Below are positions 8,901 through 39,615 of a stretch of 64,000 nt of DNA, one piece after another. The notes under the pieces are model-generated. The model was not told where the DNA came from. It was given only the letters and a program-made list of their open reading frames with translations, and ran no database searches. The position numbers were made by a program, and so were the translations under genes. This DNA comes from Macrostomum lignano. Its lineage: Eukaryota. How positions within the stretch are numbered: position 1 is the stretch's first letter; every line of letters starts with the position of its first letter. The stretch covers positions 1-64,000 of the forward strand of contig NIVC01001131.1 of assembly GCA_002269645.1 (NCBI GenBank), written 5' to 3'.

Positions 8901-11225
8901 AGTGGCTCAATATGTACTGATGTTGGGTCGGCTGAAAAATAGAATTGCACTTGTGTAATTGAAAGTTCCACTCAGTGGTGATTAGGGTATTCATATTTCT
9001 AACGGTGAAATTATTCATGGTAAACTAATTTATTTGAAATGTTATTTTTACCTATACATTACCACATATTGTGAAATAAAATGCTTAGTTGATAAGATAA
9101 CAAACTTCTTACGGACGGGCGGGGTGATTGTCGTATCGCCAGGTAGTCCAGAAAATTGGCAATTTATAGTAGCGATGAATAATACGGCCAAATTCTGATG
9201 CATATCAATCAATGTGTGAATTAATTTAAAGTCATGAGAATGGTGCGCTTGCTGAAATAATCAAGAAAACACTCTACCAACTGAATAAGTATATTAGCAA
9301 TTTTTTAAAATGAACATAATTGTTTTATAACTAACGTGCGCGACGACCACACTTTGATTGCAAACTGGGTGCAGAATGCACTTTCTAATGTGGCCCATGT
9401 CACTGTGCCAAATTGAAAAATATCGATGAGCCGTTTCGTCAGTATGGAGATAAAATAAAGTCGACACTTCGCTGTTTCTGCAAGCTGCAAAAACAAACTT
9501 TAATTGAACCAGCTTAAGCAGATTTTCGATTGTTTTTAGCAATAAATTTACTTTCCTTACAAGAACTAGGAAGGTCAGAAACACAGAATTGAAATTTGAA
9601 TCCGGATTTGACCACTGAACCGTCCGTTCGGAACACAAGAGTCACACTGCCAGTGAATGTTGTCTGTACTCCATTGTGGTCACCACCCGTTAGGTTAAAC
9701 AGAGACATATTACCAATGCTTGGTACGACGCCCTGAAATACTTGCAGCATGTCATATCCTTTTTCAGTGCGGAATGAGGCGAAATTTATCCAGACCGATT
9801 GTAAGTTCTTGGCCTGAATGCTCCAAGCTACTCTCAAATTGTTCGAATACTTTTGCGCTCGAAAGTCGGGATGACTGTATCGTTCTCCACTAATAGCTTT
9901 TATCATTTCTGTGGCAGGATCTGCATTTTATATGGACATACATGTATTAGAATAGTTGCAGTAAATGACGATTTTTAGCGATTTTTCAGTGTTACTTTTG
10001 TTTACATCACATTAAATAATTGCTATAGGGCAGATAGCTAGTTAAATGTGATTTTACTCTAATTGTAGTAGTGCAGGCTTGGGAATTGTTAGGGGGTTAT
10101 GATAGACAAGGGAGTTTGGGAGTTTTTTTTACCAGTATAGAGCAGTTGGGCTCTAGAAAAGGAAGTCATGTAGCTCATCTCGGGACTTAGAAAAACAGAA
10201 GCAACTGGAGCTTAGGGTCAGCTAAGATTAAGCGAGTTAAGATCAGGGAATTAGGAATTGGGAATACATAAAACTACTATCAGTAGTTTTCGCTAGTAAC
10301 AGCACACTATGGTAGTCATTATGTTGCACTCGGGAACTAATAATGCCTTGCAACTAATTGCATATCACTTTTCTAATTATAATCTTTCGAATTATAATAA
10401 CAATTATGGATTCCTGTCTTAATTATTTAGTCTTACATAATGAGAATTAAGAACAGCAGAGAACCTGGCTGGTGGCAGCAAATACCAATTCAAGCCAGTA
10501 TCCACTAAGAACCAAAACGAGTAAAATAACAAGTAGCCTAGACCAGGCAAGCCACGGCGAAGTTTTCTTTTGTGCCGATAAGTTTATACAAATGTAGTTG
10601 ACTAGACAGGGAGGGAATGATTATCCAAATTTCGGTGGCACTTGTCAATAAAATTATACACGGATTCGATGTGAAAGTGAAAACTTCAAGGACAGATGAG
10701 TATAATCAAATTTGAACTTTCTGAAAATACAGCACTATGAAGAGCTATATTATGTCAATATAAATATTTCCATAGATTTTCCCACAAAACAAAAAACGAA
10801 TGCATTCAGCAACTAAGACTGCGTAAAAAACTTACTGACATAATAACTGTCTCCCATAAAACTTGCACCAAACGTGGCCCTGTGCTTGTATCGAAAACTG
10901 AAACCCACGTTCCATCCCACGCCGTTGCTTTTGCATCGTAGTAGAACAGGGCCAGCGAGCCAGAACTCTGAGAGAGACGATTTTCCAGACGACAAACGGA
11001 ACCTCTCTGTAGCATTACTTGGCGATTCCGATCTTTCGTACAAGTGAACTGTGCGGCAAATGCTCAAATATATAAAAAGGGTGAACTGTATCTCAACTGC
11101 ATTGTTAGTGCTGAGCAGCCAACAGTGATCAACATTGACACTAGGTCCTCGGTAGTTTACATTCGAGGAATTAGCCTGGACAATACCTTCTGGTTCGCTT
11201 AGAATTGTATTTATTGAGCATGAAG
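5918..11225 (-). CDS. CUB-CUB/Ig-like repeat single-pass membrane protein, paralog A
   Basis: CUB exons 11225-10836 and 9920-9561 are homologous to those of paralog B. Further exons: 9484-9336, about 8931-8760, 8692-8542, 8467-8304, 7617-7467, about 6960-6700, 6655-6506, and TM exon 6131-5918 (PALIGLAVATVVSVLVAAFFF). Most joins are GT-AG and in phase; two need +1 nt. A possible signal-peptide exon at 11414-11349 (MVRLQLDWKIFLVLLLS) has an unresolved phase. Confidence 0.75.
7958..8010. mobile_element. 53-bp hAT-type MITE
   Basis: 21-bp TIRs CAGGGACTACTC(G/A)AACATGTT with 1 mismatch, flanked by the 8-bp direct repeat AAATATGT (7950-7957 and 8011-8018). Confidence 0.75.
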
Positions 11226-12365
11226 CTGGTTTTTCGTGTGAAAAGTAGATTAAGTAAAATAGGTAGAATATTAAATTTACGTAGAAAATTTTAAATGGTT
11301 GCACACCTGTTTATTTCTTGTTTTATAGAGCTTGTGAGAAGAACTTACCTCCAAACTATCAGTGCTTAGTAGTAAAACCAAAAAAATTTTCCAATCCAGT
11401 TGTAACCGTACCATTCTTTTATGCGTGTTTGAAGAATCTATAGCGAAAAGTTCCTATGTTCTGAATAAATTTTGTTGTCTTGAAGAACCTTAAAACAAGA
11501 TGCTTTAACTTAAGGCTGTGTAAATGGGTTCTATAATATATTTAGTCTCTCTATCCGTGGCCGCAAGAACAAGTCTACTTGTTGAATTTCACATGAAAGT
11601 TAAATATATCAAAGCAGGAGAACAACATGGACATGAAGTGTAGAATCGTAGAGTTAAATCTCAGAATAGATCGATTTTCTTTAACTGTAATATAGCGACG
11701 AATTTGGTTCAGGCTTGGTTATATACTGTATACCGATAGGATCGAGGCTTCATAACACTCTAGTGGTGTATCGATAGTTTCGTGGCGCAGAACCAGTTGT
11801 TGAAGAAAATGCTTTGTTTTGCGCATTTGTATAAGTGCGCGCTGATAAACTTGCACGCCTTTCGTCGCTTGATTTAAAAAAAATTTTTGTGACCAATTTC
11901 GAATCACACAAGAAGTATACGAATGTGATACGCTTGTATTCGTGGACTTGCAAGGGGTGGCAACAGAGGCGTCCAAGCAGCTCGGATTGGACTAAAAGTC
12001 TAAATTTGACCACCAAATGCAAATGGAAAAAGCCAAGATCAATTCTTGCAACGTTTTCTATCAAAAAGTCAATTTAATATTAGACTAGCTGTCTTCATTC
12101 ATTCTGTCTTTCATATTTATACTAAAGGACTACAATCATTGCTAATTAAAAAGACAATAAACTAAGACGCATTTTATAGCCCGTGTTTTTGTACGCGCGA
12201 CGCATGATTAAAAAAAAGCAAATTAACGAAAGAAGACAATTTTAATTCAATTTTTTCAATTTTTTACGCATCAAATGGCCTAAACAGAGTAAAATTGTTG
12301 AGAGCGTAAGAAAAAAATACGTGACAAACCAATTGGAGGGTTTCTTTCTGGCTGACATACATGTA

Positions 12366-12595
12366 CAGTAATTATACCTAAGGACCATCCGGTACAGCAA
12401 TCTGCCGCCGGCAACGTCGACCGACGTTTCTGACATGTATCGACGTTGCTGGCGCTGGTCACTTTTATATCACACGACGTTCCTCCGACGCATAACGTCG
12501 TTTGCCGTCGATTTAATGTAAAAATACACATTTGCTAGCGACGTCCATCGACATCGACGATGCGTCGGCGAGCGTCGGAATGCTTTGCGGGTGTA
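12366..12595. mobile_element. Degenerate CpG-rich inverted-repeat (MITE-like) element
   Basis: The ends are loosely inverted (ATCCGGTACAGCAATCTGCCGCCGGCAACG versus the reverse complement of CGTCGGCGAGCGTCGGAATGCTTTGCGGGT). Many CGACG/CGTCG motifs in an AT-rich context; no TSD seen. Confidence 0.35.
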
Positions 12596-13291
12596 AGATC
12601 TCAATTTTCAGCAAAATTTTGAATTTTCAAATAAAAATCATTCACAGAGACAGAAAGTAGCGAGAAAATTTTACAAAAAATTGAAGACGCAATGAAAAAA
12701 GATAAATCTATAGGGCTCAACAAAATATTACACGCATAAAATTTGTGAGAAAAGCTTATCTGTTTGTGGACTTAACACAGCAACTTTGCTATAGTTGAGA
12801 TTTACTTGCCACGTACTAATCATTGGCAGCTTGCTTGGGCAATGCGAGTTTTTTATTTTTAATCATACAAAATAATCAAATGGCATACACTAAATTAGAT
12901 AGCGCATCCAGCGATTCCAAAAATGATTTGCAAAAAAAACTATTTAACACTCGAATGTAATTCAAGCATGCAGTTTCATAACTTTTTATGCACCAGCAAT
13001 ATTTTTTTGTAAGTAGTGTCAAAGCTGAACTATTTGTCGTCGGAACTATAGAAGTCTTTATCAACTATCTTTGCATTTGAATTCAACATTATTTGCACCT
13101 TTATTGGCTTAAAAATGTGTAATTCATTAATTAATTCACATGTAGTACACCTACCTATAAAATATCATGAGATTTCACAGCATTGTGTCGTCATCCCTTT
13201 TAGCAGTTTTACTAAATTAATTAGTTCCGATTCTTGGACAAGTGGCAAGTTGAGTGCTTAATAATGTGCAAAACGTTAACCTTAGATTTAG

Positions 13292-14616
13292 TCAGCATGC
13301 ACTCTTCCAAATCGTTGTAGCTGAAGTAGACGCTCCGCCTTCGGTTGAGTGCCTCGACGGCTGTTGTGTCAGTGGTACAGATACAGATGCTGAGGCTAAG
13401 CCAACACCGCTGCTATTCTTCTGTCGTCGACTTCCAAGAAGTCTGCGACCAGCCGCCGCGGAGACCGTTTCTGCATCTTCCTCTTCAGAACTGTCGTCCA
13501 AAGCTCTATTAGTGAAGCTGAGTCGATGCTGCAATGGAGGTGCCTGAGCTGGGGAAATATCACGTCGGAGATGCACTCCTCGACGAGGGTGCTGCGGCTG
13601 TTGCTGCATAGTCGAGGGAGGTGGCGGAGGCGGAGGCGGCGGTAGTGCCCTGGCGGGCTGGAAGAATATTGAATCGTCATCTTCCTCCTCAACGCAGACG
13701 TCGTATCGACCACCATGCGAGCCAGATGCCCGATCATCTTCATCTTCTTCGGCTTCGAAATCGTCTTCCTCTTCGTCGTCCAGATCGATTAGCCGTCGGG
13801 CAGGGGGCGGAGGCGGACTAGGCACCGATGCTATTCGGAACTCCATCGGTTCGCCACCATATTTACTCGCAACCCCTCCATGCTGATTCTTAAAATAGTT
13901 CTCCTCGTTGCACTCGCCGCACTCGTTTTCGTGGATCTGGGCGTGGGTGACGCGACGGACACCTGAGCTAATAAAAGAACTAGGCGGCGATCGTTGACGA
14001 CTTTGCTGATTGCGTCGTCGGTTGTGTCGTGGGCGACCAAGGCTCGGATCTGCAGAGGACTCAGGGCGGACCGGCGAGGTTGGCGACTCGGCATGCGATT
14101 GTGTGCGGACGAGCTCGATGTCCGGTGCCGATTGCGGACCATGTTGCGGGCCGATGCTCTGAGTCAGGTAGCGATATGTGACTCGCTTGGGCACGCGTGG
14201 ACCCAGGTCGCTGTAGTTTCGAGTTAACGACTTCTTCTGCTGCTTGGACTGACAGTCCTGGAGGATGGAGCGAAGGCCAGCAAGGCCGGAAGATTTTTGG
14301 GTCTGTTGCGGGGTTTGAGACGGCTGCGTATCACTATCGACACTGCCACCGCCCGAGGAGCTGAGAAGAGGGCGCGCACTACTGCTGCTAATATTTCCGC
14401 CGCCACCACCTCCATGGTCACCGCCTCCGTTGTCGTCGTCGCCACCTCCACCGCCGCCTTCACTTCCAGCTGCACCACCACCTTCACCGTCATCTTCTCC
14501 TTCGTCAGCGTCATTCGGGCGGCAACAGGGACACCTTCGATGCCGCAGAACATAGCTCGCCTGTCCTCCTTGTACATGTCAATGAGAAGCTCGAGCTTTC
14601 GTTCAATGTCTTCCAC
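13292..14616 (-). CDS. KCNQ: KCNQ terminal exon (helix D plus long acidic/Gly/Pro-rich tail), with an apparent 1-nt deletion near 14510-14560
   Basis: Begins [18 protein letters not shown]. The exon is 1325 nt (3n-1); a shifted frame runs open into ORF 13292-14194. Confidence 0.85.
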
Positions 14617-17600
14617 CTGGTTATCAGAAGATCAAATGTGTTAAACTATTATTTTTTCAATTAACTTTGAGTGCTAATCAATCCCAAAAAGTATATTTTC
14701 AATCTACTTACGGATCTCTCTACTTTAACGATTCGTGAAGCTAGGCTGACTTTACTCTCGTAAACATCTTTGTCTTTGCTTCCCTGACGGCCCAGAATTT
14801 GGTCGAGCCTGCGCAGTAGGTCAGTGGTATCTATGTGAAATTTTATTCATTCTTACACTTACATGTACTTAGACCTGCACTTTTGAAGTACGCCATGACA
14901 ATATACAAGCGTATAGAACGTGCTAACTTTTGCTATCGCTCTAGATAAGACTTTAGACATTCAAAATAAGACTGCATAGGATCGCAAGCAAGGCCAGGCT
15001 AGCCACGGCCAGAGCAAGCCCAGTCTTGGCTGCAGGAATGGCTTGGCCATAGACTAAAAAATGGAATATCAAAATGAGAATAAGACGCTCAATATGAGAC
15101 CAGGAGTGTGAAAGCCTTCAGATATCGCTCTAACCCTCTGACCCTCAGCCAGCTCTCCTTCTTCACCCCTTGGGTTGCATCTGACCCCTTGGATTTCACT
15201 GTGATGGCACCATCGATTTCTGCAGCAGACCGTCAGCGTCTGATCGACGCAGTAAACAATGGATCAACCATCCTAGCTAGCTGTTTGTATGGTGACTGCC
15301 AAAAAGCAAATAAATTACGTTCACTCCCGGTCTCATATTGAGCGTCTTATTCTCATTTTGATATTCCATTTTTTAGTCTATGGCCAAGCCATCCCTGCAG
15401 CCAAGACTGGGCTTGCTCTGGCCGTGGCTAGCCTGGCCTTGCTTGCGATCCTATGCAGTCTTATTTTGAATGTCTAAAATCTTATCTAGAGCGTCAAAAG
15501 CGATACTGCTTTAAAATTAACCTAATTAAATAAATGAAAAAGTGAATACCTGAGTTGGAGCACCTTGATTCTTGCCAGCATGTCAACATGCCCCGCCGAG
15601 TATTGTTCAATTACATCTTTAACGTCGTAAGGGCGAAGGGCTTCACGAAATTTTCGCCTAGCAACAAAGTATTTGACTTTTCGAATTACTCGAATGGCAT
15701 TTTTGTGCATCTCCGTTAGTTTCATCGGCGTTTCTTCGTCTAAAAAGTGAAAACAAAATTGATTTAAAGCACGCGCATTGATTAATACCAGGAATAAGGG
15801 AATTCTTTCTGCTTTGAGAATATTTGTAAAAATTTTTTTACCAAAAGCAAAAGCAAGTTTAGTCTCAAAAAAGCGGAGCTAGCCTATCGGAAATTTGACT
15901 TCGTATTTAGCCATTCAATCGTTAAATTAAAAGCCGGTAAATACTGATCGCTTACCATCTTCTTTCTGAGAAATGGAGGTCAGTGATGGCTGCGGCTCTA
16001 GACCACCTCCAGGAGTGTCGGATATTGCCAAAGAGACGTGGCTTCTGCAAAAGATACAAAAATGTACACTTTACTTTACGTTTTTATGTAAAATATGTTT
16101 ACTTGTGTTTTGCGGAAGACACTTATGTTTTCATGAATACAATCTTTAAATAGCAAATAAAATTGACGTATTTAAAATATGAAATTGCGTCCCATACTCG
16201 TAGTAAAGAATTGGCCAAAGCGTTAAAATAGGCCCTCATTTGTCAATTCAAAGAGGCTCTTGCTGCAGTCCAATAAGCGAAGCATAATAATTGCCTTATA
16301 GATATTTTGTTAAATATTATCGTTTTGGCATGCTCTCAATTAAAAATTAATACGCTCAAAACACTAGAAATTTTGTAGCCATGTTGCACTGCTAGTGATA
16401 TATCAATTATTAATAATGCGTACGTATATTGATACTGTTAATAAACATATAAGTAGTTCAGTTGATAGTTTTTATTACTAAGGCAGATATAAAAAATCAG
16501 TGGCAGTAGTGAGTGAACACAAGTATTATATGCGTCATTAATAATTGCTGTCGCGCAAGGAGAAATAATAAAAACAAACTATAATCTAAGCAAGGAAAAG
16601 TTTCCTGTCACAATTTTTCAGTGATATTTTGCTTTTAGTATGGCTGTAAATATTATTTTCGTTTTGTTTCTATCAAAGGGAGTGTTTGTTATTTATATAT
16701 TTTTGAAATTTTTTGCTCGAGAATTCACCGCCATCGATCACCTAAATGAAGTTGCCAGATCGGCAAACTTGCGAATCACGGATCGTTTCCGGGTTTTTGC
16801 CAAACCGCGCCTTCGCTGCTGCTCCGCGTCTTCGTCAGTCAGCTGCATGGACTCGTCTATTGACGAAGCATCGCTGGCTGGAGCGAGGACTGCAGCTGTG
16901 GCTGCAGTGGCTTCGGCTTCGGAAGTCACTGCATCACCGACGACAAATGACGACTGACTGTCAGCGTGCGAGAAGGGAATCACGTTGGGTGGTTGATTTG
17001 ATCTAGTAAATAATTGCAAACTAGCAAATTTGGTCTAGCTGATCGGTCTGACTCTAGCAAATAATTTTCCATATTATTTGTTACAAAAGCGTTGTTTTCG
17101 ACATAATCATCGTTATATAGATAAAAATTTCTTTTTATGTGACTTTTAACACTTAGGCTCGTCGCTCAATGGTATTTTATAGTATGGAGAGTTTTAGGTA
17201 TACATGTACATGTAAAACCAGGTAAGATAGATAGATAAAAAATTTAATAGTATATGCTGCAACTCAAAGTTCCATTCTAACACTTTACAGAAAGCTAATA
17301 AAAAGTAAATTCTAATTTTGCTTGCGCTAAAACATTTAGAAATTTAAGTTATAAAGGATGCACAACACTGGTGTGATATTTTTATTAATTGGCGTTGGCG
17401 CAATTAGGGGAAGCGTTAGTAGAGAGAACCATGTAATCTTTAAAATTTTGTTTCATCAAAACCAAAAAAGATAAATAAATCATCACAGTAATAAGAATCT
17501 TTTTTAAATAGTTTAATAGTTCTACCAGCTGTTCAGTTTTGGTAATGAGAAACTGGATAATATTATAAAATTTCACCGAACAAAAAATTGTTAGTAAAGA

Positions 17601-20600
17601 TTAACAAACAGAAGCTAAAAGATGGAGGACAGTGTACTGTATTACTAATTGTGGTAACTCACTCTATACCAATGGAACTCTACGGAAAAAGTGTTATTTA
17701 GGCATAGCTACACATGTTTAAAAGGGCTTAAAGCTTTACGCGAAAGAAAATTTTTGGTATTTTAAAACTAATTGGACCTTTCCCATTTTTGAGTCTCAAT
17801 ATCTTTACTGCTTTGAGGAGCGTATTTCAAAAAAGGTGAAAATTTTGATTAAAAACACAGTTTCCTTTCTGAAGTAAGAGCAATAACCAAACGAACTCAC
17901 TTTCCACCCGACGAAGATGCACCGCCAGCTTCAGCCGTCACGGAGTTCGGGCTACTGGGGTCCAAGTCCGGCATGGCGTTTCGTCTAGATGGCATGTAGC
18001 CGCCGGAAGCACCGCCGCCCCCGCCGCTGCCGCCGCCACTTCCGCCACCACCACGATCGCAGGACCGCTCCGACTTGTTTCGTCTCATTGTTGGAATGCG
18101 GCCGAATTTGCTGTTAAAGTTTTTAAAAAAAATATAGTACATCCTAGCACAGTATTTCCGAGCAAAGGTTTTATTTATTAGAGAGATGAGGCTTTTTAAA
18201 GAAGTAACTACCGTCAAGTTGTAAATCAAGTAGGAGTTTTTTAGGCAAATTTTATCTCTCAGGTATTCTGAGTGCTTTTCAAGGCTTTATTTATTAGATA
18301 TCTACTGTGTTATACTCGTACATCTGTGAGAAGTGTACTTGTAATTACACAATCACTGCGTGCAGGTGCGCAATTGTGTCTCGTCTCGCAACGGTGGCAA
18401 GTTTCTATATATACTGTGTTTTTTCACGCTGTGAGAACTATAAAATTATTGCCCGTATTGACAAAAATCAGAGATCTAGATCCGAGTATCAGATAATCAT
18501 GATAAGCTTATATTAAAAAAACAAGTACTTAGTTATAATTACAACTGACTATTTTATTTTTTCTTGATCTTTCTAGCTAATGAATTGCTTAGAGTAACTT
18601 TTTTCCATGAAAATACGCTAACTAATGAGTAATAGATAAAAACTATTATATTTCATTATCTGAATAATGAAATTTCCACAGATATTTTAAATATAATACC
18701 TTCTCCAGCTGTGACCTGGGCTGATTGGCCCCTGATCATTGCTTGCTATTAGATATGGCGAACTGTTCGAAGGGTATAAATTTAGAAACAGACCATCATC
18801 ACAATCGTTACTAATTTGATATTGCTATCCATTTGCTAATCAATAAAATTTGTCAATACATAGTCATTAGTTTGAAAGACTATGATTTCCACTAAAATTT
18901 GTTTTTTACTGGCATGTGGTACTTAGTTTTACATATTACATTTAATTCGGGATTAACTGCACAAACAGAGACCTGTATATAACATGGAAGATATATAAGC
19001 AATAAAGTTTACTTTATGATTTTATAGTCTTTACACAAGGAGATCAGAATTTTTTTTTGAAACAAGTTTTTAAACATCACTCAACAGCTATAGCACCTTT
19101 TCCCACTAAAATCTGACCAGCATCAAATAATGAGGGTTCGCCCAAAGATTACCGAGCTGGCATAAAGAGTCAATTAGCTAAAATGTTAAAGCTGAACCTG
19201 AAATCCCAAATATCCGGGCTCCTTGCGGAGCATTCGTAAACAGCTGGTTACTTTCAAATATTTACCGAATATACCGAATTAGAGTAACAATACTATAACG
19301 GCGCCCGAGGATTCGCTATTTACGCCCAAAAAGCATGGTTATTATAATGTTTTTGTGCTTTAGACATTTTGCCTCAGCAAGGCTGGGGGAGAGTGAATAA
19401 AAGAGCGGGTAAATGGGGGTGTAGGGGCAAAGCCCTCACATTGCAACAGTAGACACTTTCATTTGATTAAAACGAAACTTGAAAATTTTCGGGCCTAAGT
19501 GCCCGGGATTGACTAAGTGCCCGCTGGATAAAAAGGTCATGGTACAGTCTTAATTAATATCTAGTACAAATCAACATCCATGAAGTACATTTCTACGAGC
19601 TTAGTTGCACAATTTTGTCGACGGTCAAAAAGTCGGAGTCCGAGGATTATTTACTCGTAGAACTTTGGCTTCTGCAGCTTTAGTAGCTTTATTTGCTCTC
19701 TATGTAAGTTCAATAATCTTTTGGGTTCGCCTTTGCAATTCGACTGAGCTGCTGGTAGAGTATTAAAGCATTTTAGTATGTGCCATGAAGTGAGTTCGAG
19801 CAGATGATATTAGGGCGTAAATAATCCAAAAGTATCAATTTTGACGTCGCAGCGTGCTTCGCGACCAAGCAAAGGAGATAATGTTTTTAGTTTCAGAGCA
19901 AAAAGAGCTGTGCTCAAGCAGATTAATTTCATAATAAAAATGCAAAATTAATAGACAGATACACCAATGATAAACCTTTGAATGACGTTTTATAACTTCA
20001 ACACAATTTCAACATACCGAGGCGAATCATTGAAAAAGCTGGAGAAAGCGGAATTAAAATACGCAAAATAACAAAAGAAATGCAAACAGACCGACACCGA
20101 AAGGCGAAAGTTAATAAAATTTTAGTCAACACGATAAAAAACTTTCATCAACTCCGTATGGTACTACAGCATCTGCAGCAGACACTGGATATGAATACTG
20201 TTCAAACGTACCGTCTAAAGCTCGATGTGCTGTCATGGTACAGACTTCAGTAGAAGAAGAGTAGTTTTAATAGTTGAATTATTATGTGTATTATGTTTTA
20301 CGATGGCGATGGTTATGCTGATCGAAAAATTTAGCTGCCTAATAAAATTAATTTCATTGTAAATTGTTCTCTATTTCTCGAAAAGAAATTTTTACAAAGG
20401 AAAATACGAAAATAGGAATATGGGCAGTCATTGTAATTCAGATAGCAACCTAGGTAAAGAATTTGATCTACAGCAGAATCAACGCTTGAGAGCAGACTCA
20501 GTGGTAATCAATATATATTAAGGAAACTGCTACTGCGCAAATATTATTTAATTTTAGAAATCGATCATATCCCATATTGATTTAGTTAGCATCCTAAAAA

Positions 20601-23600
20601 ACAATATTAAGTCTGTGATAATATTACAAATATTACTTTTGTAATTTAATGCTATTAGCTTCTATGCCTTGCCACCAGTGAGTGGCAGAAATTTCTCGCT
20701 CCGAAGTTCGTAATATTACAAAAGTAGGTAGAAGGCGATTTTAAACTTGAAATTTTCGACAAGACAGTGACTATCTAAAATAAAGATAAATGCGCGTTGC
20801 TCTGGTTCTTAACTCAAACAATGATGGTGCTGCGAATAATTGGATTGTCTCTAAGTTGGATTTTATGCAGAAAGGTGCTTCCGAAATAAAAATATATATT
20901 TAAATAGAACACAGAGCTTCATAGACATATTGAAACAAAAATTAGTTAATAACTAGACGATACAAGCTAAACACACTGGTAGATACATGTATTCTACAGA
21001 AAGCCCTATTTTGTGCTGCGACTAAAGACGAAGATGGCAACTTTAAAGCCATGTGCACAAAAAACTTGTGCTTAGAAGAAAATGGTTTATGTACTCGTAT
21101 CTAATTTAAGGATTTTAACGAATGCGGAAATGACTATTTTATTCGATAGAAAGATAGCCATTTTGGACTTGAAGCACAATTTCAAAAAAAGTAGTGTTCG
21201 CTTACCTGCTTGGTGATCGCATTGGTCGCATGTGCGGCTTCCAAGTGGCAACAGAGGTGCTTGACGGATCAGCGGCATAGCAACGCCATAGCGACTGGAT
21301 TAGCGTTGCAGCCGGTACCCTGCGTCTAATTAGGTGCTTTTGCCGCTGGTGTTGCTGCACTTTTAATGCGAAACCCGAGCCGAGAATTCCCTGGAATCGA
21401 GGAAAAGAACCGATAGTCTTTAAGATATATTAAAATAATTCATATTTTTTAGATAAATCTCTAAATAAGACGAAAGCAATTTTAATTAGACATTCTTCTA
21501 ACTTTTCTGAATTGCACTTTAGGCGCATATATTTAATAGTGACAGCATGTTTAATACTGTACAGGCATTTTAGTAAAAAAGGAGAGGCTTGTTTTTTAAT
21601 CCTATATTTAATTTATTGAATGAATATAAACTAACTAGGCCGTTTAATTTTTCATTAGTGATGCCAGGATGCACCAGTTTAATGCTAGCTATTTGTTAGA
21701 TACAGTGCGGTGCAAGCATAGATTGGTTAATAAACTGTCAAAACTATAACAAAATTTCAACTGAGTTAATCCTGGTAGCACCAATTAATTAACGTAAGAC
21801 AACAAGCTCGTTACAACATGCAAAAGTGTAGTCTGGCAAGCAAGGAAAAATTAATAAATAGAAGGCAGTCGCAGCAGCGGCTTACAGCTGGCAGCGCAAA
21901 GAACGATATGCCGGCAATGGAACAGAAAGAGGCAACAATTTTTCCGCTCCAAGTTTTTGGGGTCACGTCGCCATAGCCAACTGTGCACAAGGTGATCTGC
22001 AAAGGTTAATTCACATTTTTCGGGGCGTTGCTTTTCTTTACCATGGCATAATTTTTCGTTGTTTCCATTAAGGCGTTGAACTTTTTGTTTAATTCAGCAA
22101 ATTAAATAGAAAAGTTAAACTGTAAATTATATTCACTTCAACAGCGAATTGCGGCACCTTTGGCAGAATCAATCACCCGTAGATGCACAGTTGGACTATG
22201 GTTTGCGACCTGAGATTATGAGCAAAGTAGTAGTTAAAAATAAATAGGTAAAGCTACCAGTCAGCGCTTGATTAAATATTATCGATAGAGTTGCCACGAA
22301 TTTGATAAATACCCTCGTATACCCAAACAAATCCAAACAACCAGATGTCATGGTATTTACTTTGTACCTTTTACTCGTACAACCTCTCATTTACGTTTAA
22401 TAGCATTTTATAATCATTTAGCTAAGTAAATGAATCCTTTAAATTCTTAATTTTCGATCCACTCCACTTTCTATTGAATTTATGGTTACTATATCTTTTT
22501 TCGTTCTATTTGGTGCAAACTGTGTTCAATTCTATGCAACACAAGCAGCGAAAACGAGCCAAGCCGAAAGACATGGTTTTCCATAGACATGTTCAGAATA
22601 CCAGCAACCAATTTGGTCTAAATTGCATTCTATTTGGGCTTAGCTCACAATTCTCTCACGATCCTCCACCAAGCTGATTTTGGAATAAGGGTCTCTATTT
22701 TCCATGTATCAATTACTCGTGCGCGAGTTATTATTGGGTAGGCCAAATTGAACGCAGCTATTTCCAAATTGCTTTCTGCTATCTGCTAGGGCCAAACCCT
22801 AAGTTTTTGACACGCCAGACTGCTGGTGAATTTTCACCAAACTGAACGCAAATTTCACCAAATAGAGTACAAAAGGTATAATTATCTTATTTCAAGTGCT
22901 TTCAAAATATTTTGTCTATTTTTTCATTAATTACTATCCGGCATAACATTCGAGAAAAAAAAGTTAGTTAATAAGTGCTTAAGACTGTAATTATCAATAC
23001 GAGCGACTAAACAAACAGGCAAAATAGCTAGCATTATATTTAAAGCTTAAAAATGTGAAATGTCATTTGGCTATTTTTAGGCTTTTTAATTATCATTTTC
23101 ATTCTAACAAGCTTATCTCAATCAGCAACTTCATTTATCATTATAACAATCTCGATAATCTCGCCGTCTGTGTTCGTCACTTTGGGATTTCAATTTTAAT
23201 TCTTTCAGCATCTGTTGTTAAGAGTATTATTTTGTGCTGTCAACTCACCGGCGGCAAGGCAAAGAAGCTAATAATTGTCAGGCAGGCCGCGGAGCAGGCC
23301 AGTTTGCCCAGATAGGACACTGGGACAGTCTGACCATAGCCAACTGTGCACAGGGTGGTCTGCCAAAATGTTCATTGAAACAGGTAACCGCCATATCGTA
23401 ATAAAAATAGCTGTGTATTTCATCGAAATACTGTTACAGTTTGAATAGCTGCATAATTTAAAATATAAATTCAAAAATAATTCAAGAGCAAACGCGTAAC
23501 CAGCCTACTTGCAGTAGTAGGACAATACAACGCAGTATAAATATCACATCATCGCGTAAATCATGTACAAACTGAATCTAATTTGAAATAAAGTGCTACA

Positions 23601-26531
23601 AAAATATGCTGTTCGCAAAGCAGCCATGAAACTTTGAATATGGTTTGTAACAGCTGATTCGAATAATTTTTTTATTCGTTAAATGAAATCACTCTTGTAT
23701 TATGAAGTGAGAGTGCTATGTAAACAGTCTGTTTTGGCTGTGAAGACTAAATTTTTTAGTTTCTTAATCATAGTAAGTGGGTACTTGACAAATTAAAAAT
23801 TGAATTGTTCTACTCGTAATTATGCTTGTATAATACGGTTCATTTATAACGACATTATTAACTCGGCATACCTGTATGAATAAATCGGCAACTAAACATG
23901 ATGGACCCCTAGTTAAATCTAAAACTGTCTTAGTTATACCATTCGGTAGAAGAATTGATTAACATGTAATTTTAAAGCTAATGAAACTACAAGTCAGAGG
24001 GTAGAAAATTGAAAGTATTGCTACTATATGTTGCTTCTAAAACTTTAAGCTCTCATAAAAGAAAAACTACTTCAAGAACTCTGCTAGACTGCAATTTACG
24101 GCTGAGTAGGGAAGACTCTTTGGAATTTCCTGACTGACTTTTCCCCTAAGAGCCAACTGCTTGACTAAATTTGCCTGATGAGAAGCTACTCGTCTGCGTT
24201 GCTTTCACAATGAATAGAAGAAAAAAATCAATCAGTTTTAAGGCTGTAAAATCAGAGAAAATAACTAATTTTAGCGACTTACCACACCCCACCAGAGCGC
24301 ATCAGCGTAATTGCTTATCTGTGTGTCTTGTTCGTCCTTCTCAATCAGGTACATAACAAATGAACTGAATATGAGGCCCAGGAACCCAATGTAGACTGTA
24401 GTAAACAGTTCCTGAAATTCGAATGGCAAAATAATACTATATTGTGCAATACTTTACTTTAAAAATGCTTGCAAAAATTTTAAGCCTAACTAATCGAATT
24501 ATAGAGTTGTTATTATGATTAGCTGTTAAACACAAGACTGAAGTGTTTTTTAGGGCGATTATCGGTAATTACTGTATGAATGTCCTATGCTTGAGCCTGA
24601 AACTCATCAGATTAATAATCGCTGCACGAATGTTCGAGGTACAGGTCAGAAAATGAAAGTGAAATGAAACTTTCTGAAAGCGATTTTGATTTTTCTTGTG
24701 AATGGCTGACAGCGAAAACAGAAATAGCTTCCGTTAGATAGGGCGGATTTGTAAATCTTTGTTGACAAATCTTTGTAAATAATATTCAGAAGATGTAGTA
24801 ATAATAAAAAATAATAAATAATAATAATAAATAAAATATTAATATTTATTTATTATTATCGGCGTAAACAATAACAAATGATATATAATAAATAACTAAT
24901 AATAAACAAAAAATAAAATAAATTAAATAATAAACCTTTGTAAATCTTTGTATAACATTGCTTTTCTATGTAGAAAGGTCGGGGGTTTGATTATCGCCCC
25001 ATTTAGAACGATTTGTGTCTTTGAGCAAGGACTGAACAGCCGTACGCAGCCTTCAGATGCGCCGCGCACTAGATGCGGCTGAGCTATCGGTTGAAAATCT
25101 TCCCATTAATTGGGCAGGTGTAATCAATTATTAGTATTATTGTTATATTCTTCTACTCCTACGAATAAGAAGGTGAAAAATGCATTACTAGATAATGGGC
25201 GAACTCAGGTTGAAGGACACTATACATTTCAAACTTGGTTAAAGGTCAGTTTTGCATTTTTTGCATAATCCATTAGCAGGATCGAGAGCTTTATTTAGCT
25301 CAAAACAAGGTCCTAAAAACGGGAAATTTCGAATTTTAAAACAGCTGAAAAACTTTCCCATTCCCATAGTGTCTTCTGTAGTGAAACTGGCCTATGGACG
25401 AAATTGCATGGTTTGCGAGGGTAGTGCTGTTTTATGATTTCTGAGGGTTGCTTTGTGATTTAATATTTGATGATTGATTTATCCTTTCATATTTTAGTCT
25501 TTATCACTGGTTCATCCAATGACCCGTTGCGATTATTTATTTAAAAGCTCACCTGCCGATGCGCCCAGACCACCGAGGCCAGCAGTTTCCAGCTGCCACC
25601 GCGGCGGTCCATCCGGATCATACGGAGAATCTGGAAGAACCGGAGACCGCGAAGTGCGGACGCTGCGAACACCTGGCGATCGCTGCCCAGTGCCAGCACG
25701 ATCACTGAGGCCATAATTACAATCAGATCTGAATAATAAACAAATAAGAGAGTTCTTTTTTAAACAATAAAAATTAAATAATTTTCTTGTGAATTTTACG
25801 AGCTACATTTTTTATTTAGTCTGCCGCCCTTACAAAAGGTAACTAAACCTACGGAATTGTCGTTATCTGTATTAGTCTATCATACTTCGTAGTTTGCTTC
25901 ATTCCTTCCTTCATGCTCCTTCACGCTAGCAACACTAAACATATACCAAAATTAGAAAAAATTAGGTTTAAAATGAGTTCCCTATCAGCTAATTGATTTT
26001 TGCATCCAGTAGACTGTTAAAGGGCCTTGCAAAAAAGTTAAAAGCTCTCCGCTAGCTGTTAGAAATATTCGTTTAGCATTTTATGATAAACATTCCTCTG
26101 GGACTTTTAAACGGGCGTTGTAGCCCCAAGAAAATTTTCTCCGCAAGCAGGTTTTGGCTGGTGCCAACAGGCATTTTGTAAGACTGTGTCTGGGAGCAGC
26201 TGTGTCCTGTAAGCCAGTACAAAAGCAAGAAACGGACAGCAGAGCCAATACAAGTGGAATGCAGATAGACGGGGGAAAATGAAGGAAAAGAAGTGTCTTC
26301 TCAGGTCCCGGGAGACCAGCCAAGCGCAGGTTCCCACCAGAGATAGCTACCTCGCAAGGGTGGGCAAAAATACCAAAAAGGGACAAGAAGACTGGGCTTG
26401 ATGTAGCTACATGCATCTAGAACATCGCGCTATCGCTAGGAGAAATCCGAAACCCATCAAGGAAGCGACTCGACTCATGACCTGCCCCAAACCCAATCGA
26501 CACCTTCCATTGCCCTAGCTGTCATCTTTCA

Positions 26532-26573
<42 letters not shown>

Positions 26574-28355
26574 CTTTCCCGCCTTTCCAATGGTTTCATC
26601 ATTAACTTTGTCGGCAGAGGAGACAGCCAAGAAAAAGATTCGATCTGAAGAAAATAATAATGCGAACAAGAAGATGTAGAAAAGTCTGGTTATTTTTGTC
26701 TGCTTAACAAGTTGGGATTCAGCCCCTCGGCAAGAGAGGCAAAGGATGAGAACCTCTTATGTCAGAAAGATACCAGGGTAAGACTCTGCAAAAAGTGAGT
26801 CCTTTAAGCCCTTCCCTGTCACCTAAAGCACACCGATAGTCAGCGGCTATATGAAACGTGCTGACAGGGCTAACATACCAAAAATGTATCCCATGTCTGT
26901 CTCTATCAAACCACCGAGCTCAACAAGTTCTGCAAACTGTCAGATGGTTCTGGAAGCGACGAGAAATGCGAATTGCGAGCCACACCCTTTAGACTGACTG
27001 ACTGACCGACTCGGGCGTCTGTCAGCGCTGGGCATCGCCAGAAATGCATTTAAGCGAAGCGCGGAGGAGGCACCACACCCAACCAAATATGACAGGCCGC
27101 GGCAGCTGTGAAAGGAAAACTGTAAATGAGATCTATGATGATGCGAAGCCATAGCTTCTCTATTTTTGAGATGGATTATACAAGCAGGCCGCTTTGATTT
27201 GCTTTATGCTGATTGCTGTAGCAAAAAAGCCGAAAGCAGAAAAAAGCGCCTAACGCATTGCCCGTATCTTTCTTATATTGTTCACCGAGAAAGCGCTGAG
27301 GCATTGGAGATGAAGAATCAGATATTTAGCTTTATTGCAAGCGCAGTCGCTCACAGATAGGCAGAAACTGTATCTAAGGCCCGAGTGAGGGAGAAAGATT
27401 AGAGACGCTGGAAGGAGAGAGTGCGTAAGTGGGAATAATTCTGGGGGAGAGATTTCGAAATATGCGCAACAGCTGAATTGCATCGACTTTTTAGCCTCAA
27501 AGGCCCGGCCGGGATAGCAGATTTATGCGAGATTCTGAGGAAAGACACACAGACAGGCACAGCAGCAGGAGACGTGGGAGATAGAAACACAAGGCGGGGG
27601 TCCCCCCTGCTGTTGCCGCCCATTGCTGCAAAGCCGGGAGTGGAGCTTGGAGGGCCAACCTCCCCATCTCCTTCTCTCTCCATCCTGCCTTCTGCACAGA
27701 CTGCTCTCTAAGTATGCCGCGAGTCCGCTAGGGCGGGCAAGTCCTCCCCCAATAAATCACTGAATTGGTCTTCGCCTTCAGCCATGCAGGCTGCTCTCGT
27801 TGCCCAGAGCTCTCTGGGAGGAAAGCGAAAGGAATAGGGGTTAATCCGACGGCCGGCTCAGCCCCTCAATCTCCCCGCACCGCGGCCTCTCTTGCCCTCT
27901 TTTCCCCTTTTTCTTCTCCCCTTGCCCATCTGTCAGGTGGTCGGTTTCGTCTCAGAAGACTGCTTGGCACAAAACGGGAAAAGAGGGAGAAGATGGCGGA
28001 GCAGTGGAGAAAAGGAGGGCTAGCTCATATTGATGATTCAGTGCGGAAAAGTGGGAGTAAAATACGCTTGGTGAACTTTCTCGTCCAGCCATTCGTTAGT
28101 TCTGTTCACTCATCTCTCCCTCCTCTCTCATAACCCAGCAGGCTTAGGGCCAATTCAATCTATGAATATGTTACAGAAAAATAGCTTTACTCTCAATTTG
28201 CTTTTTTGCCCATGGCGGCCCTTGTCATCGATCGGGGGAAAGTTCGCGAGAGTGGGGTTTGTTTTGTCTGACTTGGCACACACGTCTTCTGGGAAACTGA
28301 TGACTGGTGTGCATTTGGTCTTCAGTTATGTATTGGACTGACTGACTGACTGACT

Positions 28356-28430
<75 letters not shown>

Positions 28431-31400
28431 TGACTGACTGACTGACTGACTGACTGACTGACTGACTGACTGACTGACTGACTGACTGACTGACTGACTG
28501 ACTGACTGACTGACTGACTGACTGACTGACTGACTGACTGACTGACTGACTGACTGACTGACTGACTGACTGACTGACTGACTGACTGACTGACTGACTG
28601 ACTGACTGACTGACTGACTGACTGACTGACTGACTGACTGAGAAGGGTGACTGACTGACTGACTGACTGAAACTGAGCAGTCTGTCCTCGCCAGCCTTGG
28701 TAGCGGCTGCGGCACCCGGCCGACCACATGCGCAAGCAGTACTCGGTGAAGAACCAAAATAGCATCCCAGTTTCCTGTTGAAGTAAAAATGCAGATTTTT
28801 ATTCACATTTAAGTATTTTGCTTTGAACGAAACGAAACACAGACTACTTCGGACGTATCATCATTTTTTACAACCAAAAGCGTTGTTTTCGTTTACTAAC
28901 TGAATTAGGACAAAGTTATGCGTCAGCGTGTGAAAGAACTACGTTATTTTATGTACCTGAAGTCAAGATACAAAATTTCGATTATCTGCAGCCTCCGTTG
29001 CTTAGTGGTCCAGATCGTTGACATTACCCTAAGCAAGAAGTCAGGAAAAAATCCCACCCGTTCTGCCATTGATGACCCACAGACCTGGTCTGTCCAACGG
29101 TTCAAGAGACCTGCGCCTGACCTTGCCATTAGAGTGTATTGCAGCGTCAGATGACGTCCTGTGACGCTGCTTTAACGAGCATGACTCTGCACCGTACACC
29201 AAGGTTTTGTCAAGAGCAATGGTGTGTAAGTGCTTGAGGAGCATAAACGAAAACAATCATCAAGGATTTTGTGAGTGGCTATCAAATTTGAATTTCCCAC
29301 TCACCATATAAAAAAGGATTTCGCTGGCAATTTCGTTGTGCTTGAAAGCCAACTGATTTTTGCTGCAGGTGGTCGGCGGTGGACTGTGACCGCTGCTGGT
29401 AACTTTGGAGTCTTTTGGGTCGCGATGGTCTCTGACGCAGTTGGTCATGGTGGACAGCACCGAAAACACCAGACAGATGAACACGGAAGCGAAGCTGCAG
29501 TTTGTAAACCAGGTATAAAAGCTACTCGTAGATGCGTACCATCAGGGAGATGAGAGATAGATGAGTACCATCAACGAGATTAGAGCTATATGTGTGGCAT
29601 CAACGAGATTAGAGCTATGAGTAGCATCAACGAAATGAGAGATAGATGAGTACCAACAACGAGATTAGAGCTATATGTGTGGCATCAACGAGATTAGAGC
29701 TATGATTGCATCAACGAAATGAGAGATAGATGAGTACCATCAACGAGATTAGAGCTATATTTGTGGCATCAACGAGATGAGGGATAGATGAGTACCATCA
29801 ACGAGCACATAAGAGCTGAATGAGCTACATCAACGAGATTAGAGCTATATTTGTGGCATCAACGAGATGAGGGATAGATGAGTACCATCAGGGGGACGAG
29901 AGATAGATGAGTACCATCAGGCGCATGAGAGCTGGATGAGTACCATCAGGCACATGAGAGCTAGATGAGTACCATCAGGCACATGAGAGCTAGATGAGTA
30001 CCATCAGGCACATAAGAGCTGGATGAGTACCATCAGGCACATGAGAGCTAGATGAGTACCATCAGGCACATAAGAGCTGGATGAGTACCATCAGGCACAT
30101 GAGAGCTAGATGAGTACCATCAGGCACATAAGAGCTGGATGACTACCATCAACGACATTAGAGCTCTATGAGTCGCACAACGAGATGAGGGATAGATGAG
30201 TACCATCAGGGGGATGAGAGCTGGATGAGTACCATCAGGGGGATCAGAGCTGGATGAGTACCATCAACGAGATTAGAGCTCTATGAGTCGCACAACGAGA
30301 TGAGGGATAGATGAGTACCAACAGGGGATGAGAGCTGGATATATCACTGCATAGGTAGAGAAGGCTTGTGCTTGAGAAGGAACTATGCAAAAAACAAGAT
30401 GAGGAAATTAAACTAAATTAAAAAGGATGAAAGCTTTGACAGTAAGAAATAAGAATCCTTACTAATTAAATGCGACGGATGACCAGAGCAGCCTATTTAC
30501 CATTGTTCTCATGGAAACGATCTAAATTTAACCAAATTTTTAACCCGAGCAAAGAAATCTATTTTTGGCTGTTAAGAACAGAACTAATTAAGGATGTTGA
30601 GTAATTAAGGATGTTGTTTTAATGGCATGCCCAGAATCTGGTTGCATTTGGTTTTCCCGATGACAGATGGATAATTAGTTCAAGCCATTGTCAAATGGGG
30701 TTTTAAATTTCCAGTGTCTTGGTAGACAACTGACTCAAAACAGAGGCATAAAGCAGCGTTGCAGTAAAGCTGGGGTTTGGGGAAGGTTAGCTACCAATTA
30801 AAAAGAGAATGCTATAGGTTCATTGAGCTGAGTGCCATGCACCGTTCTTCACTGGCAAACATCAGTTTTTTTAATCGATACCTAAGTTCGTCGTCCACAA
30901 CAAATTTGACGAGTCAATATCCAAATTGAAATTTGCCCAATTTTCAAGCGATTATTGAACCACTCAGTTTCACTCTGCACTTGATGGCAAACATATTTTG
31001 CAGCTTTCCACTCAGTAGAGGCAGCGCTGTATATGGAAGTTCCAGGGTCTGTTAAAGTCGGGGCCAAGCTTGCTGATGCATGTGCACTCTGAGCAATTGA
31101 CTGAAAGTGTTTATTTCGGACAAACACTTACCGAGTTTGCCGCGGGCTTGGGAGGGATAGAGAGTCAATTGAAAATTGTAGCGCTTGCGACTCAAGTAGA
31201 CAGTGAGGTGAGGACAGTGTGGACAGGATGAATTCAACTCTTGCTTGCATGCATCACTGAGCCTCGCAGCGAGATCCCGGAGTGCCGCAGTGTAGCGATG
31301 TGAAAAACGATGTGAAAAAAGTGAGGTGCAAATTCAATTCCAAAAGAACGTGAGTTAGCATTCAATTTAGCAGGTCTTCAGAATGAGATTTGAGAAAAGG

Positions 31401-31794
31401 TTGAGCATCTATTCCTGAGTTTTTAATGCCCCACTATTAATAAACTTCAAGGTATGAAAACACGTGATGGGTCTACTCATGTCCAATAGACAATAATGTT
31501 GCACTACTCACACAATTACGTGATAGGTGATGCTCTGCCATGTCTTGGGCCTCTCCAGGAAGTTGTAAACCCTGGCCTGCAGTCGCCTGTACTTGGCGTC
31601 CTGCCTGGAGTTCTTCAGGCCGAGCGGCTTGCCAAGCAGAGACATTCGCGGCTTTGCGTAGCGTGCGCTGCTGCTCAGCGTTCTCAACCGATTGTCATCC
31701 GCTGAAGAGCTGACGCCGCCGCCTTCGTCCCCGTCATCGCCCGTCGGAGGAATCCGGCGGTTGCGACGATAGTGCCCAGATAGCTGTGGCTGTG

Positions 31795-31827
<33 letters not shown>

Positions 31828-31914
31828 CCAAAGTCGCGTCAGTTGTCGAGAACAGCCCTTGATCTTCGCGATCTGTGCCAAATTGGATTTGAGCTTTTGT
31901 AAAACTTGGTGGTC
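13292..31914 (-). CDS. KCNQ: KCNQ (Kv7) voltage-gated potassium channel, whole gene span
   Basis: Exons 31914-31512, 29494-29305, 28774-about 28640, 25728-25553, 24411-24283, [23359-23249 or 21996-21886], 21390-21206, 18762-18700, 18110-17901, 17002-16742, 16044-15956, 15739-15550, 14808-14712, 14616-13292. Motifs: [103 protein letters not shown]. Exon lengths fit the splice phases, apart from the exon 3 tail and a 1-nt shortfall in the last exon. Confidence 0.97.
14712..14808 (-). CDS. KCNQ: KCNQ exon, helix C-D region ([32 protein letters not shown])
   Basis: cag acceptor at 14811-14809, gtaagt donor, phase 2 to 0. Confidence 0.9.
14937..15493. mobile_element. Foldback/MITE-like element with 172-bp near-perfect inverted arms in a KCNQ intron
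   Basis: 14937-15108 is the reverse complement of 15322-15493 with about 3 mismatches; the spacer is 213 bp. Confidence 0.85.
15550..15739 (-). CDS. KCNQ: KCNQ exon, helix B/C (calmodulin-binding region)
   Basis: [51 protein letters not shown]. Confidence 0.97.
15956..18762 (-). CDS. KCNQ: KCNQ helix A-B linker exons (18762-18700, 18110-17901, 17002-16742, 16044-15956)
   Basis: Four open, GC-richer segments with GT-AG ends that chain in phase (2-2, 2-2, 2-2, 2-1) between the helix A and helix B exons; low-complexity Gly/Ala/Ser content. Confidence 0.75.
21206..21390 (-). CDS. KCNQ: KCNQ exon, end of S6 plus helix A (IQ-like)
   Basis: [41 protein letters not shown]. Confidence 0.97.
21886..21996 (-). 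CDS. KCNQ: KCNQ pore/S6 exon 6b (canonical)
   Basis: 111 nt, phase 0-0, [37 protein letters not shown], cag/gtaagc. Confidence 0.97.
22156..22213. promoter_or_regulatory. Intronic element antisense to the acceptor and filter codons of both pore exons (candidate docking site or editing-complementary sequence)
   Basis: The plus strand reads acctttggcagaatcaatcacccgtagatgcacagttggactatggtttgcgacctga, an inverted and bulged copy of tttggcag|accaccctgtgcacagttggctatggtcagac (6a) and acctttgcag|atcaccttgtgcacagttggctatggcgacgtga (6b). Confidence 0.7.
23249..23359 (-). CDS. KCNQ: KCNQ alternative pore/S6 exon 6a (non-canonical)
   Basis: 111 nt, phase 0-0, open frame [37 protein letters not shown], ttttggcag acceptor, gtgagt donor. 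Confidence 0.85.
24283..24411 (-). CDS. KCNQ: KCNQ exon, S5 and pore helix
   Basis: [43 protein letters not shown], 129 nt, phase 0-0. Confidence 0.97.
24970..25050 (+). mobile_element. Possible CORE-SINE-like remnant
   Basis: GAAAGGTCGGGGGTTTGATT (B-box-like) followed by TGTGTCTTTGAGCAAGGACTGAAC, resembling the CORE domain TGTG..CTTGGGCAAG..ACTTAAC. Confidence 0.4.
25553..25728 (-). CDS. KCNQ: KCNQ exon, S3-S4 and S4-S5 linker
   Basis: [59 protein letters not shown]. Confidence 0.97.
26537..26570. repeat. (CT)n microsatellite
   Basis: Direct reading. Confidence 0.95.
28337..28670. repeat. (ACTG)n microsatellite abutting or overlapping the KCNQ exon 3 end
   Basis: Direct reading. Confidence 0.98.
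28640..28774 (-). CDS. KCNQ: KCNQ exon 3 (S2 and S2-S3 linker); the 3' end is degraded into the microsatellite
   Basis: [30 protein letters not shown], then only traces of the expected RLxF...PFC. Confidence 0.85.
28950..29225 (-). mobile_element. RTE-like non-LTR retrotransposon fragment (post-RT region)
   Basis: Two frames give [22 protein letters not shown] and LLNRWTDQV...RVG...[12 protein letters not shown], resembling RTE-clade LLYG.ETWTL...RRLDAF / L.I.W.D.V.N...R.G...S.I..RRL. Confidence 0.55.
29305..29494 (-). CDS. KCNQ: KCNQ exon 2 (S1 plus extended S1-S2 loop)
   Basis: [16 protein letters not shown]...ASEILFYM, phase 2 to 0. Confidence 0.93.
29545..30345. repeat. Complex minisatellite built on a GATGAGTACCATCA core with variable 25-31 nt units
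   Basis: Direct reading. Confidence 0.9.
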
Positions 31915-31960
31915 CTAAGTGCCACTGGGAGCGAGACAGAAGCAGAAATAAAAATGGCAC
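31512..31960 (-). CDS. KCNQ: KCNQ N-terminal exon (polyQ; RMSLLGKPL...YNFLERP)
   Basis: ORF 31508-31960; gtgagt donor at 31511; 5' boundary uncertain (AG at 31917-31915 or about 10 nt upstream). Confidence 0.9.
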
Positions 31961-36197: not shown

Positions 36198-36875
<678 letters not shown>

Positions 36876-39245: not shown

Positions 39246-39275
39246 GCAGAGAGATTAATTAATGAAGCCGCTCAC

Positions 39276-39581: not shown

Positions 39582-39615
<34 letters not shown>

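Follow-up and report, generated by a model that had tools for sequence, protein, structure and literature searches.

An alternative pore/S6 exon, apparently of early flatworm origin, in a KCNQ (Kv7) channel gene of Macrostomum lignano

The DNA considered here, called the window throughout, is a stretch of 64,000 nucleotides (nt) from the flatworm Macrostomum lignano (contig NIVC01001131.1, positions 1 to 64,000 of the forward strand). Through protein searches, the gene of interest within it was identified as a KCNQ/KQT (Kv7) channel gene, which runs on the minus strand from start ATG to stop at 13295..31645 and is orthologous to, or identical with, Mlig012321g1 (protein P0121). The latter sits on contig NIVC01001769.1, whose aligned segments are 93–99% identical to the window over positions 3281..41870, with 97–99% identity in the part of the KCNQ gene from exon 3 to the stop. 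The subject of this report is exon 6a of the gene, an alternative version of the exon for the pore loop, the selectivity filter and the sixth transmembrane segment (S6), which an initial annotation made from the sequence had described as a non-canonical and possibly silent pore. Exon 6a is very probably a real, selected and ancient alternative exon that changes gating.

Exon 6a lies at 23249..23359 on the minus strand and comprises 111 nt, or 37 codons, in phase 0-0 and with intact splice sites. Together with its flanks it reads ttttggcag, then ACCACCCTG...TTGCCGCCG, then gtgagt, the coding part starting with ACC ACC CTG and ending with CCG CCG. Its canonical twin, exon 6b (21886..21996, minus strand), is likewise 111 nt long and in phase 0-0, and lies downstream of 6a after a spacing of 1252 nt; 19 of the 37 residues are identical between the two. 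Both have a cag acceptor, and the donors are gtgagt for 6a and gtaagc for 6b. The pair is a tandem duplicate: the homologous exons are neighbours, match in length and phase, and have separate splice sites. It is flanked by two constitutive exons, namely exon 5 upstream (24283..24411, minus strand), which encodes S5, the turret and the pore helix up to WWGV (...ADALWWGV), and exon 7 downstream (21206..21390, minus strand), which encodes helix A and contributes the glycine of the PAG or PPG motif. When KCNQ proteins were searched by tblastn, both 6a and 6b were matched, and nothing else in the window.

An isoform model containing 6a reaches 103.9 bits for Ion_trans, the six-transmembrane domain (Pfam cut-off 25), and 122.1 bits for the KCNQ-specific C-terminal domain with helices A-D (PF03520, cut-off 25), and Ion_trans_2 likewise scores above its Pfam cut-off. 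The positively charged S4 is encoded by exon 4, and exons for helices B, C and D were located in the window. The sequence of exon 6a is identical in a second M. lignano contig (L001). Chance falls far short of explaining the exon.

Measured against the pore signature T(I/V)GYGD...SFFALPAG, exon 6b is complete, and 6a keeps TVGYG and SFFAL, the D being replaced by Q and PAG by PPG. All the residue differences between 6a and 6b that the initial annotation had listed are present: D10 to Q, T15-W16 to S-Y, A28-G29 to T-I (by which AGISFF becomes TIISFF) and A37 to P, along with the shifted cysteines, which stand at 22 and 26 in 6a and at 25 in 6b. Exon 6a aligns gaplessly to human KCNQ1 chains of solved structures (residues 308–344), and on this map Q10 corresponds to D317, S15/Y16 to T322/W323, I29 to A336 and P37 to A344. 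Column 29, the classical glycine-hinge position, is occupied by Gly in KCNQ2-5, as in those invertebrate KCNQs that were inspected, and by Ala in KCNQ1. The residue after GYG is D or E in all 240+ other KCNQ proteins inspected. The filter TVGYG of 6a and the pore-helix tryptophan pair supplied by exon 5 are both intact, and nothing was found in support of the altered ion selectivity that had also been proposed.

As a reference for a test of selection, a second and diverged M. lignano KCNQ paralog (L002) was used, of which a further contig, L009, is a near-identical copy. This paralog carries the same 6a/6b exon pair, its 6a ending in (Y/F)ALPP. Between the window and L002, 22 of the 111 nt of exon 6a differ, giving 19 synonymous (Sd=19) and three non-synonymous differences (Nd=3), the latter being Q10H, S23A and F33Y in the direction from the window to L002. 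The resulting ratio of non-synonymous to synonymous substitution rates (dN/dS), a check that the initial annotation had called for, is 0.030 (P=1.7e-8 versus neutrality) and marks 6a as a selected coding exon; for exon 6b the ratio between the paralogs is 0.007, and exons 5 and 7 are similar. Only the exons with 5–10 flanking nt are alignable between the paralogs, the introns being unrecognisable, and both splice sites of 6a are kept. The third copy, in L009, has an intact 6a with GYGH, and the frame and both splice sites of 6a are conserved in the three Macrostomum loci. Both 6a and 6b are under purifying selection between the paralogs, and both are also conserved in flukes.

These data bear directly on the view that 6a is a pseudo-exon, dead or in decay, which never enters an mRNA. 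Such a view could appeal to the M. lignano gene models, none of which includes 6a, and to the substitutions in 6a that are pathogenic or null in human KCNQ1. It was ruled out because of the dN/dS of 0.03 and the splice sites conserved, together with the frame, in three loci with unalignable introns; the same exon type is, moreover, retained in flukes and annotated in isoforms there. A pseudo-exon is thereby left very improbable and, judged by its codons, exon 6a is a real, selected exon and not a decaying duplicate.

Outside Macrostomum, protein searches revealed a 6a-type exon in Schistosoma bovis, S. intercalatum, S. mekongi, S. rodhaini, S. mattheei, S. mansoni and S. curassoni, and also in Trichobilharzia, Heterobilharzia, Paragonimus, Echinostoma and Opisthorchis. 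In flukes the type occurs in one KCNQ gene of digeneans, and the Paragonimus locus has the order exon 5, 6a, 6b, exon 7. In a neighbour-joining tree of 22 exon-6 peptides over 37 columns, the clade uniting all 6a exons received a bootstrap value of 97.9%, and a grouping of Macrostomum 6a with Macrostomum 6b received 0%. Six columns are diagnostic for 6a versus all other exon-6 peptides. Column 15 holds S in 6a and T in all others, column 16 holds G or Y as opposed to W, and column 17 holds L where the others have other residues; column 26 holds C, again with other residues elsewhere, column 29 holds I or V as opposed to G or A, and column 37 holds P as opposed to A.

The type is absent from several other places that were inspected. 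The orthologous introns of the cestode Taenia crassiceps, of the annelids Capitella and Lamellibrachia and of the mollusc Lottia contained no 6a-type exon, and none was found either at the KCNQ locus of the monogenean Cichlidogyrus, whose exons 6 and 7 are fused, or in the locus of the second KCNQ paralog of Fasciola. When the 6a peptide was run by HMMER against 1.84 billion representative proteins in an exhaustive scan, the only 6a-type matches were trematode fragments. A single origin needs losses, given that the examined cestode and monogenean genes are without 6a, and it might be supposed that Macrostomum and the trematodes duplicated the pore exon independently and that the common residues are convergent. 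With 37 residues available and no more, and with all the shared states at functionally coupled sites, this has some appeal. Against it stand the six diagnostic columns held in common, the contrast of 97.9% for the all-6a clade with 0% for the species-specific grouping, and the length, the phase and the position of 6a upstream of 6b, which are the same in both lineages; convergence is considered improbable. Macrostomorpha branches near the base of Rhabditophora, and for this reason a single duplication early in flatworm evolution with later losses is the simplest account. One tandem exon duplication early in rhabditophoran evolution would have produced the 6a/6b pair, which would then have been lost in other lineages and would survive in Macrostomum and, among digenean trematodes, in a single KCNQ gene.

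A separate observation concerns the residues after the filter in penaeid shrimps. In the KCNQ proteins of Penaeus spp. (P0200, P0201, P0236, P0303, P0308, P0313, P0317), SY or TY replaces the near-invariant TW. These pores were considered as a second case of an alternative pore exon and rejected, as all penaeid isoforms carry SY/TY and the change is constitutive. The equivalent of W323 can thus apparently be replaced by Tyr in a constitutive and presumably working pore.

The fluke sequences also change how the odd features of exon 6a are to be read. The initial annotation had treated them collectively as a non-canonical pore, and the changes are indeed all real; four of the five (the altered TW, the lost glycine hinge, PPG and the new Cys) nevertheless form the conserved signature of an old flatworm exon. 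By this comparison, those four are ancestral features of the 6a module and the loss of the Asp is not. Because the four also occur in trematode 6a, which keeps GYGD, the exon taken whole is more plausibly a gating/vestibule module than a pore that has been broken.

The loss of the Asp after GYG is confined to Macrostomum. The codon at this site is CAG (Gln) in the window gene and CAC (His) in the paralog, and the path from GAC through CAC to CAG could have been taken one step at a time; because this path is stepwise, the common ancestor of both Macrostomum 6a exons probably had His. Only three residues differ between the 6a exons of the two paralogs and this is one of them, a sign that constraint at the site may be relaxed. 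The background on D317 and PAG that the initial annotation had given is borne out by the literature (PMC11206195; PMC7212895). In Kv7.1, the carboxylate of D317 forms a hydrogen bond with W304 of the pore helix and thereby keeps the filter conducting, and the human Kv7.1 mutants D317N, D317S and D317H show no current (PMC11206195). D317N/G/Y are among the listed variants of long-QT syndrome type 1 (LQT1), P343-A344-G345 is the gating hinge of S6, and mutations of A336 shift activation (PMC7212895, citing Seebohm 2006).

With regard to the use of the two exons, several public annotations of flukes are informative. Equal-length isoform pairs exist in S. bovis (P0131/P0247 and P0248/P0249) and in T. 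regenti (P0126/P0255), and these differ at 13 positions, all of them within exon 6; schistosome annotations thus list one-or-the-other isoforms for this exon. Other public trematode models, P0026, P0123, P0127 (UniProt A0A5K4EQ12, S. mansoni) and P0257, run through both exons in succession and so contain two filter/S6 segments; they are probably annotation errors. From the exon pair and its fluke counterparts, mutually exclusive use of 6a and 6b is inferred for M. lignano.

An inverted repeat around exon 6a suggests that RNA structure influences this choice. One arm, at 23243..23273 on the minus strand, spans the 3'-terminal 25 nt of exon 6a and the GTGAGT donor, and its reverse complement lies in intron 7 at 20653..20683 (minus strand), 523 nt downstream of exon 7, the next exon beginning near 20246. 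The match is 28/31 in the window, where two of the three mismatches form G-U pairs, and 31/32 in L001, and no chance match to the 6a arm was encountered in 100 shuffles of the window. The duplex between the arm and this candidate pairing element is predicted at -58.1 kcal/mol, compared with -16.1 +/- 3.6 for shuffles. If it forms, the intron-7 element may mask the 5' splice site of 6a and so bias exon choice. The paralog is arranged differently: there it is the 3' part of exon 6b that recurs in inverted orientation, some 230 nt upstream of the exon and within the intron that separates it from 6a (17 nt exact, 20 nt at 95%; L002 26704-26723 vs 27035-27054; L009 18561-18577), with a predicted duplex of -48 kcal/mol compared with -22 +/- 3.5 for shuffles. 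In Paragonimus westermani, a 15-nt segment from within 6b recurs twice, inverted and without mismatch, in the long intron between exon 5 and 6a (L006 3511-3525 and 9451-9465); these copies could be pairing elements or part of a repeat.

Taken together, the joint explanation considered best, with a probability of roughly 55%, is that 6a is an ancient, mutually exclusive pore/S6 module that alters gating, and that Macrostomum 6a is poorly conducting or non-conducting and acts in heteromers. The choice of 6a would swap the module from the filter to S6, retaining TVGYG and altering four regions. At the outer end of S6, T-W would give way to S-Y or S-G with a Leu after it; the upper S6 would be packed with more small residues and cysteines; at the glycine-hinge position a beta-branched Ile or Val would replace the flexible upper hinge; and in the lower hinge PAG would become PPG, with a second proline gained. 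From these positions, 6a subunits are expected to show shifted or slowed gating with altered voltage dependence and kinetics, and a different outer vestibule and drug pocket with a different pore pharmacology. In Macrostomum, the loss of the Asp would in addition destabilise the conducting filter and, by analogy with Kv7.1 D317N/S/H and Shaker D447N, 6a homotetramers probably conduct poorly or not at all. Macrostomum 6a would then act mainly by co-assembly with 6b subunits of the same gene or of the paralog, tuning current size and inactivation. The initial annotation had raised a silent or dominant-negative role in heterotetramers; for Macrostomum it is reasonable to suppose that 6a is silent or modulatory in heteromers, and on these analogies this is given roughly even odds. 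A fuller version, in which 6a is a silent Kv7 subunit encoded by splicing that governs conductance and inactivation in heteromers with 6b, the 6a:6b ratio is set by the RNA duplex over the 5' splice site of 6a, and the Asp-bearing 6a of flukes is a gating-shifted second pore, is put forward as a speculative and rather doubtful extension.

The chief competitor is that 6a homotetramers are fully conducting, the other substitutions of 6a re-stabilising the filter. The exon would then add a further conducting isoform, and nothing silent or dominant-negative would be involved: its Kv7 current would differ from the first simply in voltage dependence, kinetics, C-type inactivation or pH/Zn sensitivity. 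Consistent with this are the intact TVGYG filter and tryptophan pair of the pore helix, a purifying selection on 6a as strong as that on the constitutive exons, and the retention of GYGD in fluke 6a, which presumably conducts. In the opposite direction, none of the three human D317 substitutions (to N, S or H) left any current, and the exchange of Q for H between the paralogs, as one of three changes in the exon, looks like relaxed constraint and not like tuned compensation. A conducting homomer is therefore a serious possibility, held at clearly less than even odds.

Further points weigh against the explanation preferred here, that of an ancient gating module which in Macrostomum conducts poorly and acts in heteromers. 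Channels of the hERG/EAG type (GFGN) are naturally without this Asp and yet conduct, a point that also speaks for the conducting homomer, and other changes in 6a might compensate for Q or H. A silent subunit, to judge from the fluke sequences, cannot be the ancestral role of the 6a type, since fluke 6a retains the Asp. The shared origin of the 6a exons rests on 37 residues. All public M. lignano models (P0121, P0241, P0242 and the paralog models) carry 6b and none carries 6a. Because both exons are 111 nt long, double inclusion or double skipping stays in frame, and neither the frame nor nonsense-mediated decay enforces exclusivity. The pairing elements are arranged differently in the two Macrostomum paralogs, and the comparison of these paralogs yielded no conserved intronic elements. 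Lastly, the window's own copy of the gene carries a damaged exon 3.

This exon, which encodes S2, lies at 28680..28774 on the minus strand, and its 3' end is damaged in comparison with L001 (around 13527-13580). It is without about 31 nt that are present in L001, namely those for LLFARRPFCIV (the S2-S3 linker and the start of S3) plus the GT donor, and small indels and a (CAGT)n microsatellite adjoin the damaged end. Either an assembly error or a defective allele may be the cause. Because 6a is identical in L001, the damage is without effect on the conclusions about 6a. A separate micro-exon for the S2-S3 linker was also considered; none was found in the window, and the damaged exon 3 explains the gap.

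Several other features of the window were noted. The sequence is of eukaryotic character, with AT-rich introns and many satellites. Between KCNQ exons, a minus-strand open reading frame at 16741-17034 has plausible splice sites and is not in model P0121; it may be a cassette exon of the C-terminal linker. Downstream of the KCNQ gene, CUB-domain exons (PF00431) lie on the minus strand at 1655-2176 and 9517-9927 (E = 4.5e-6 and 3.6e-9) and are parts of a neighbouring gene or genes. Long tandem arrays crowd the half of the window upstream of the KCNQ gene (about 35500-63600); their periods are 3, 4, 6, 16, 20-22, 33, 34 and 42 nt, examples being 38046-39262, 40386-41730, 43373-44418 and 45692-47475.

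Among known systems, the closest are the KCNQ isoform pairs of schistosomes (S. bovis CAH8487909.1/CAH8487919.1; T. regenti CAH8825931.1/CAH8825928.1), which have the same exon position, length and order and share with Macrostomum 6a the six diagnostic residues, that is S, non-W, L, C, I/V at the glycine hinge, and PPG. They differ from it in having GYGD where Macrostomum has GYGQ or GYGH. The fluke 6a isoforms are annotated, no characterisation of them having been found in the literature, whereas Macrostomum 6a is not annotated. A further parallel is the Shaker gene of the lobster Panulirus, in which, as Kim and others are said to have described in 1997 (J Neurosci 17:8213), alternative exons swap the pore region and give isoforms that differ in conductance, kinetics or pharmacology. 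As with 6a, splicing there exchanges the pore-forming region of a tetrameric voltage-gated potassium channel; unlike 6a, the channel is a Kv1 and not a Kv7, and the variants keep the canonical Asp after the filter. We know of no demonstration that the Panulirus variants are deeply conserved across a phylum.

The KvS subunits (Kv5, Kv6, Kv8 and Kv9) have an intact GYG and an altered proline hinge in S6, are silent alone and modulate Kv2 in heterotetramers; their behaviour may serve as a working model for Macrostomum 6a. They are, however, separate genes, and they lose the second proline of PXP, whereas 6a gains a proline on passing from PAG to PPG. The human KCNQ1 mutants at D317 (N/S/H), A336 and P343-A344-G345 concern the same positions as Q/H10, I29 and P37. 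Those are single disease or laboratory changes in a mammalian background, while the changes of 6a co-occur in a selected exon with co-varying neighbours. As regards splicing, docking and selector RNA pairing guides mutually exclusive exon choice in arthropod Dscam1 and 14-3-3 xi, which share with the present locus tandem duplicated exons and long-range complementary RNA elements. Here the predicted pairing differs in that it involves the 6a exon and its donor instead of intronic selector sites, and in that it varies between paralogs.

Alternative pore exons in other potassium channels, such as Panulirus Shaker, are already known, and the schistosome isoforms are present in genome annotations. 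A search of the literature for KCNQ pore splicing in flatworms or schistosomes, or for mutually exclusive KCNQ pore exons, returned nothing relevant, and no paper was found that describes a KCNQ pore/S6 alternative exon, its conservation across flatworms, or a natural Kv7 pore without the filter Asp. To our knowledge, GYGD and a PAG hinge are common to all Kv7 pores that have been characterised. In practical terms, the annotation of M. lignano is without the 6a isoform, and in several helminth models both exons are read one after the other, probably in error.

Kv7 channels are important in the control of excitability and serve as drug targets. A naturally selected module, apparently as old as the phylum, in which both hinges (glycine and PAG) and the outer vestibule are altered at once, and in one lineage the filter Asp as well, amounts to a natural mutagenesis experiment on the way these elements work together. 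According to the annotations, flukes such as Schistosoma, Paragonimus and Opisthorchis obtain two different Kv7 pores from one gene. The positions changed in 6a overlap what we take to be the retigabine and chromanol binding regions of mammalian Kv7, and it is because of this overlap that the exon bears on anthelmintic pharmacology. If the splicing-based version of the explanation is true, these parasites, whose 6a keeps the Asp, would have in it a second Kv7 pore, shifted in its gating and distinct in its pharmacology.

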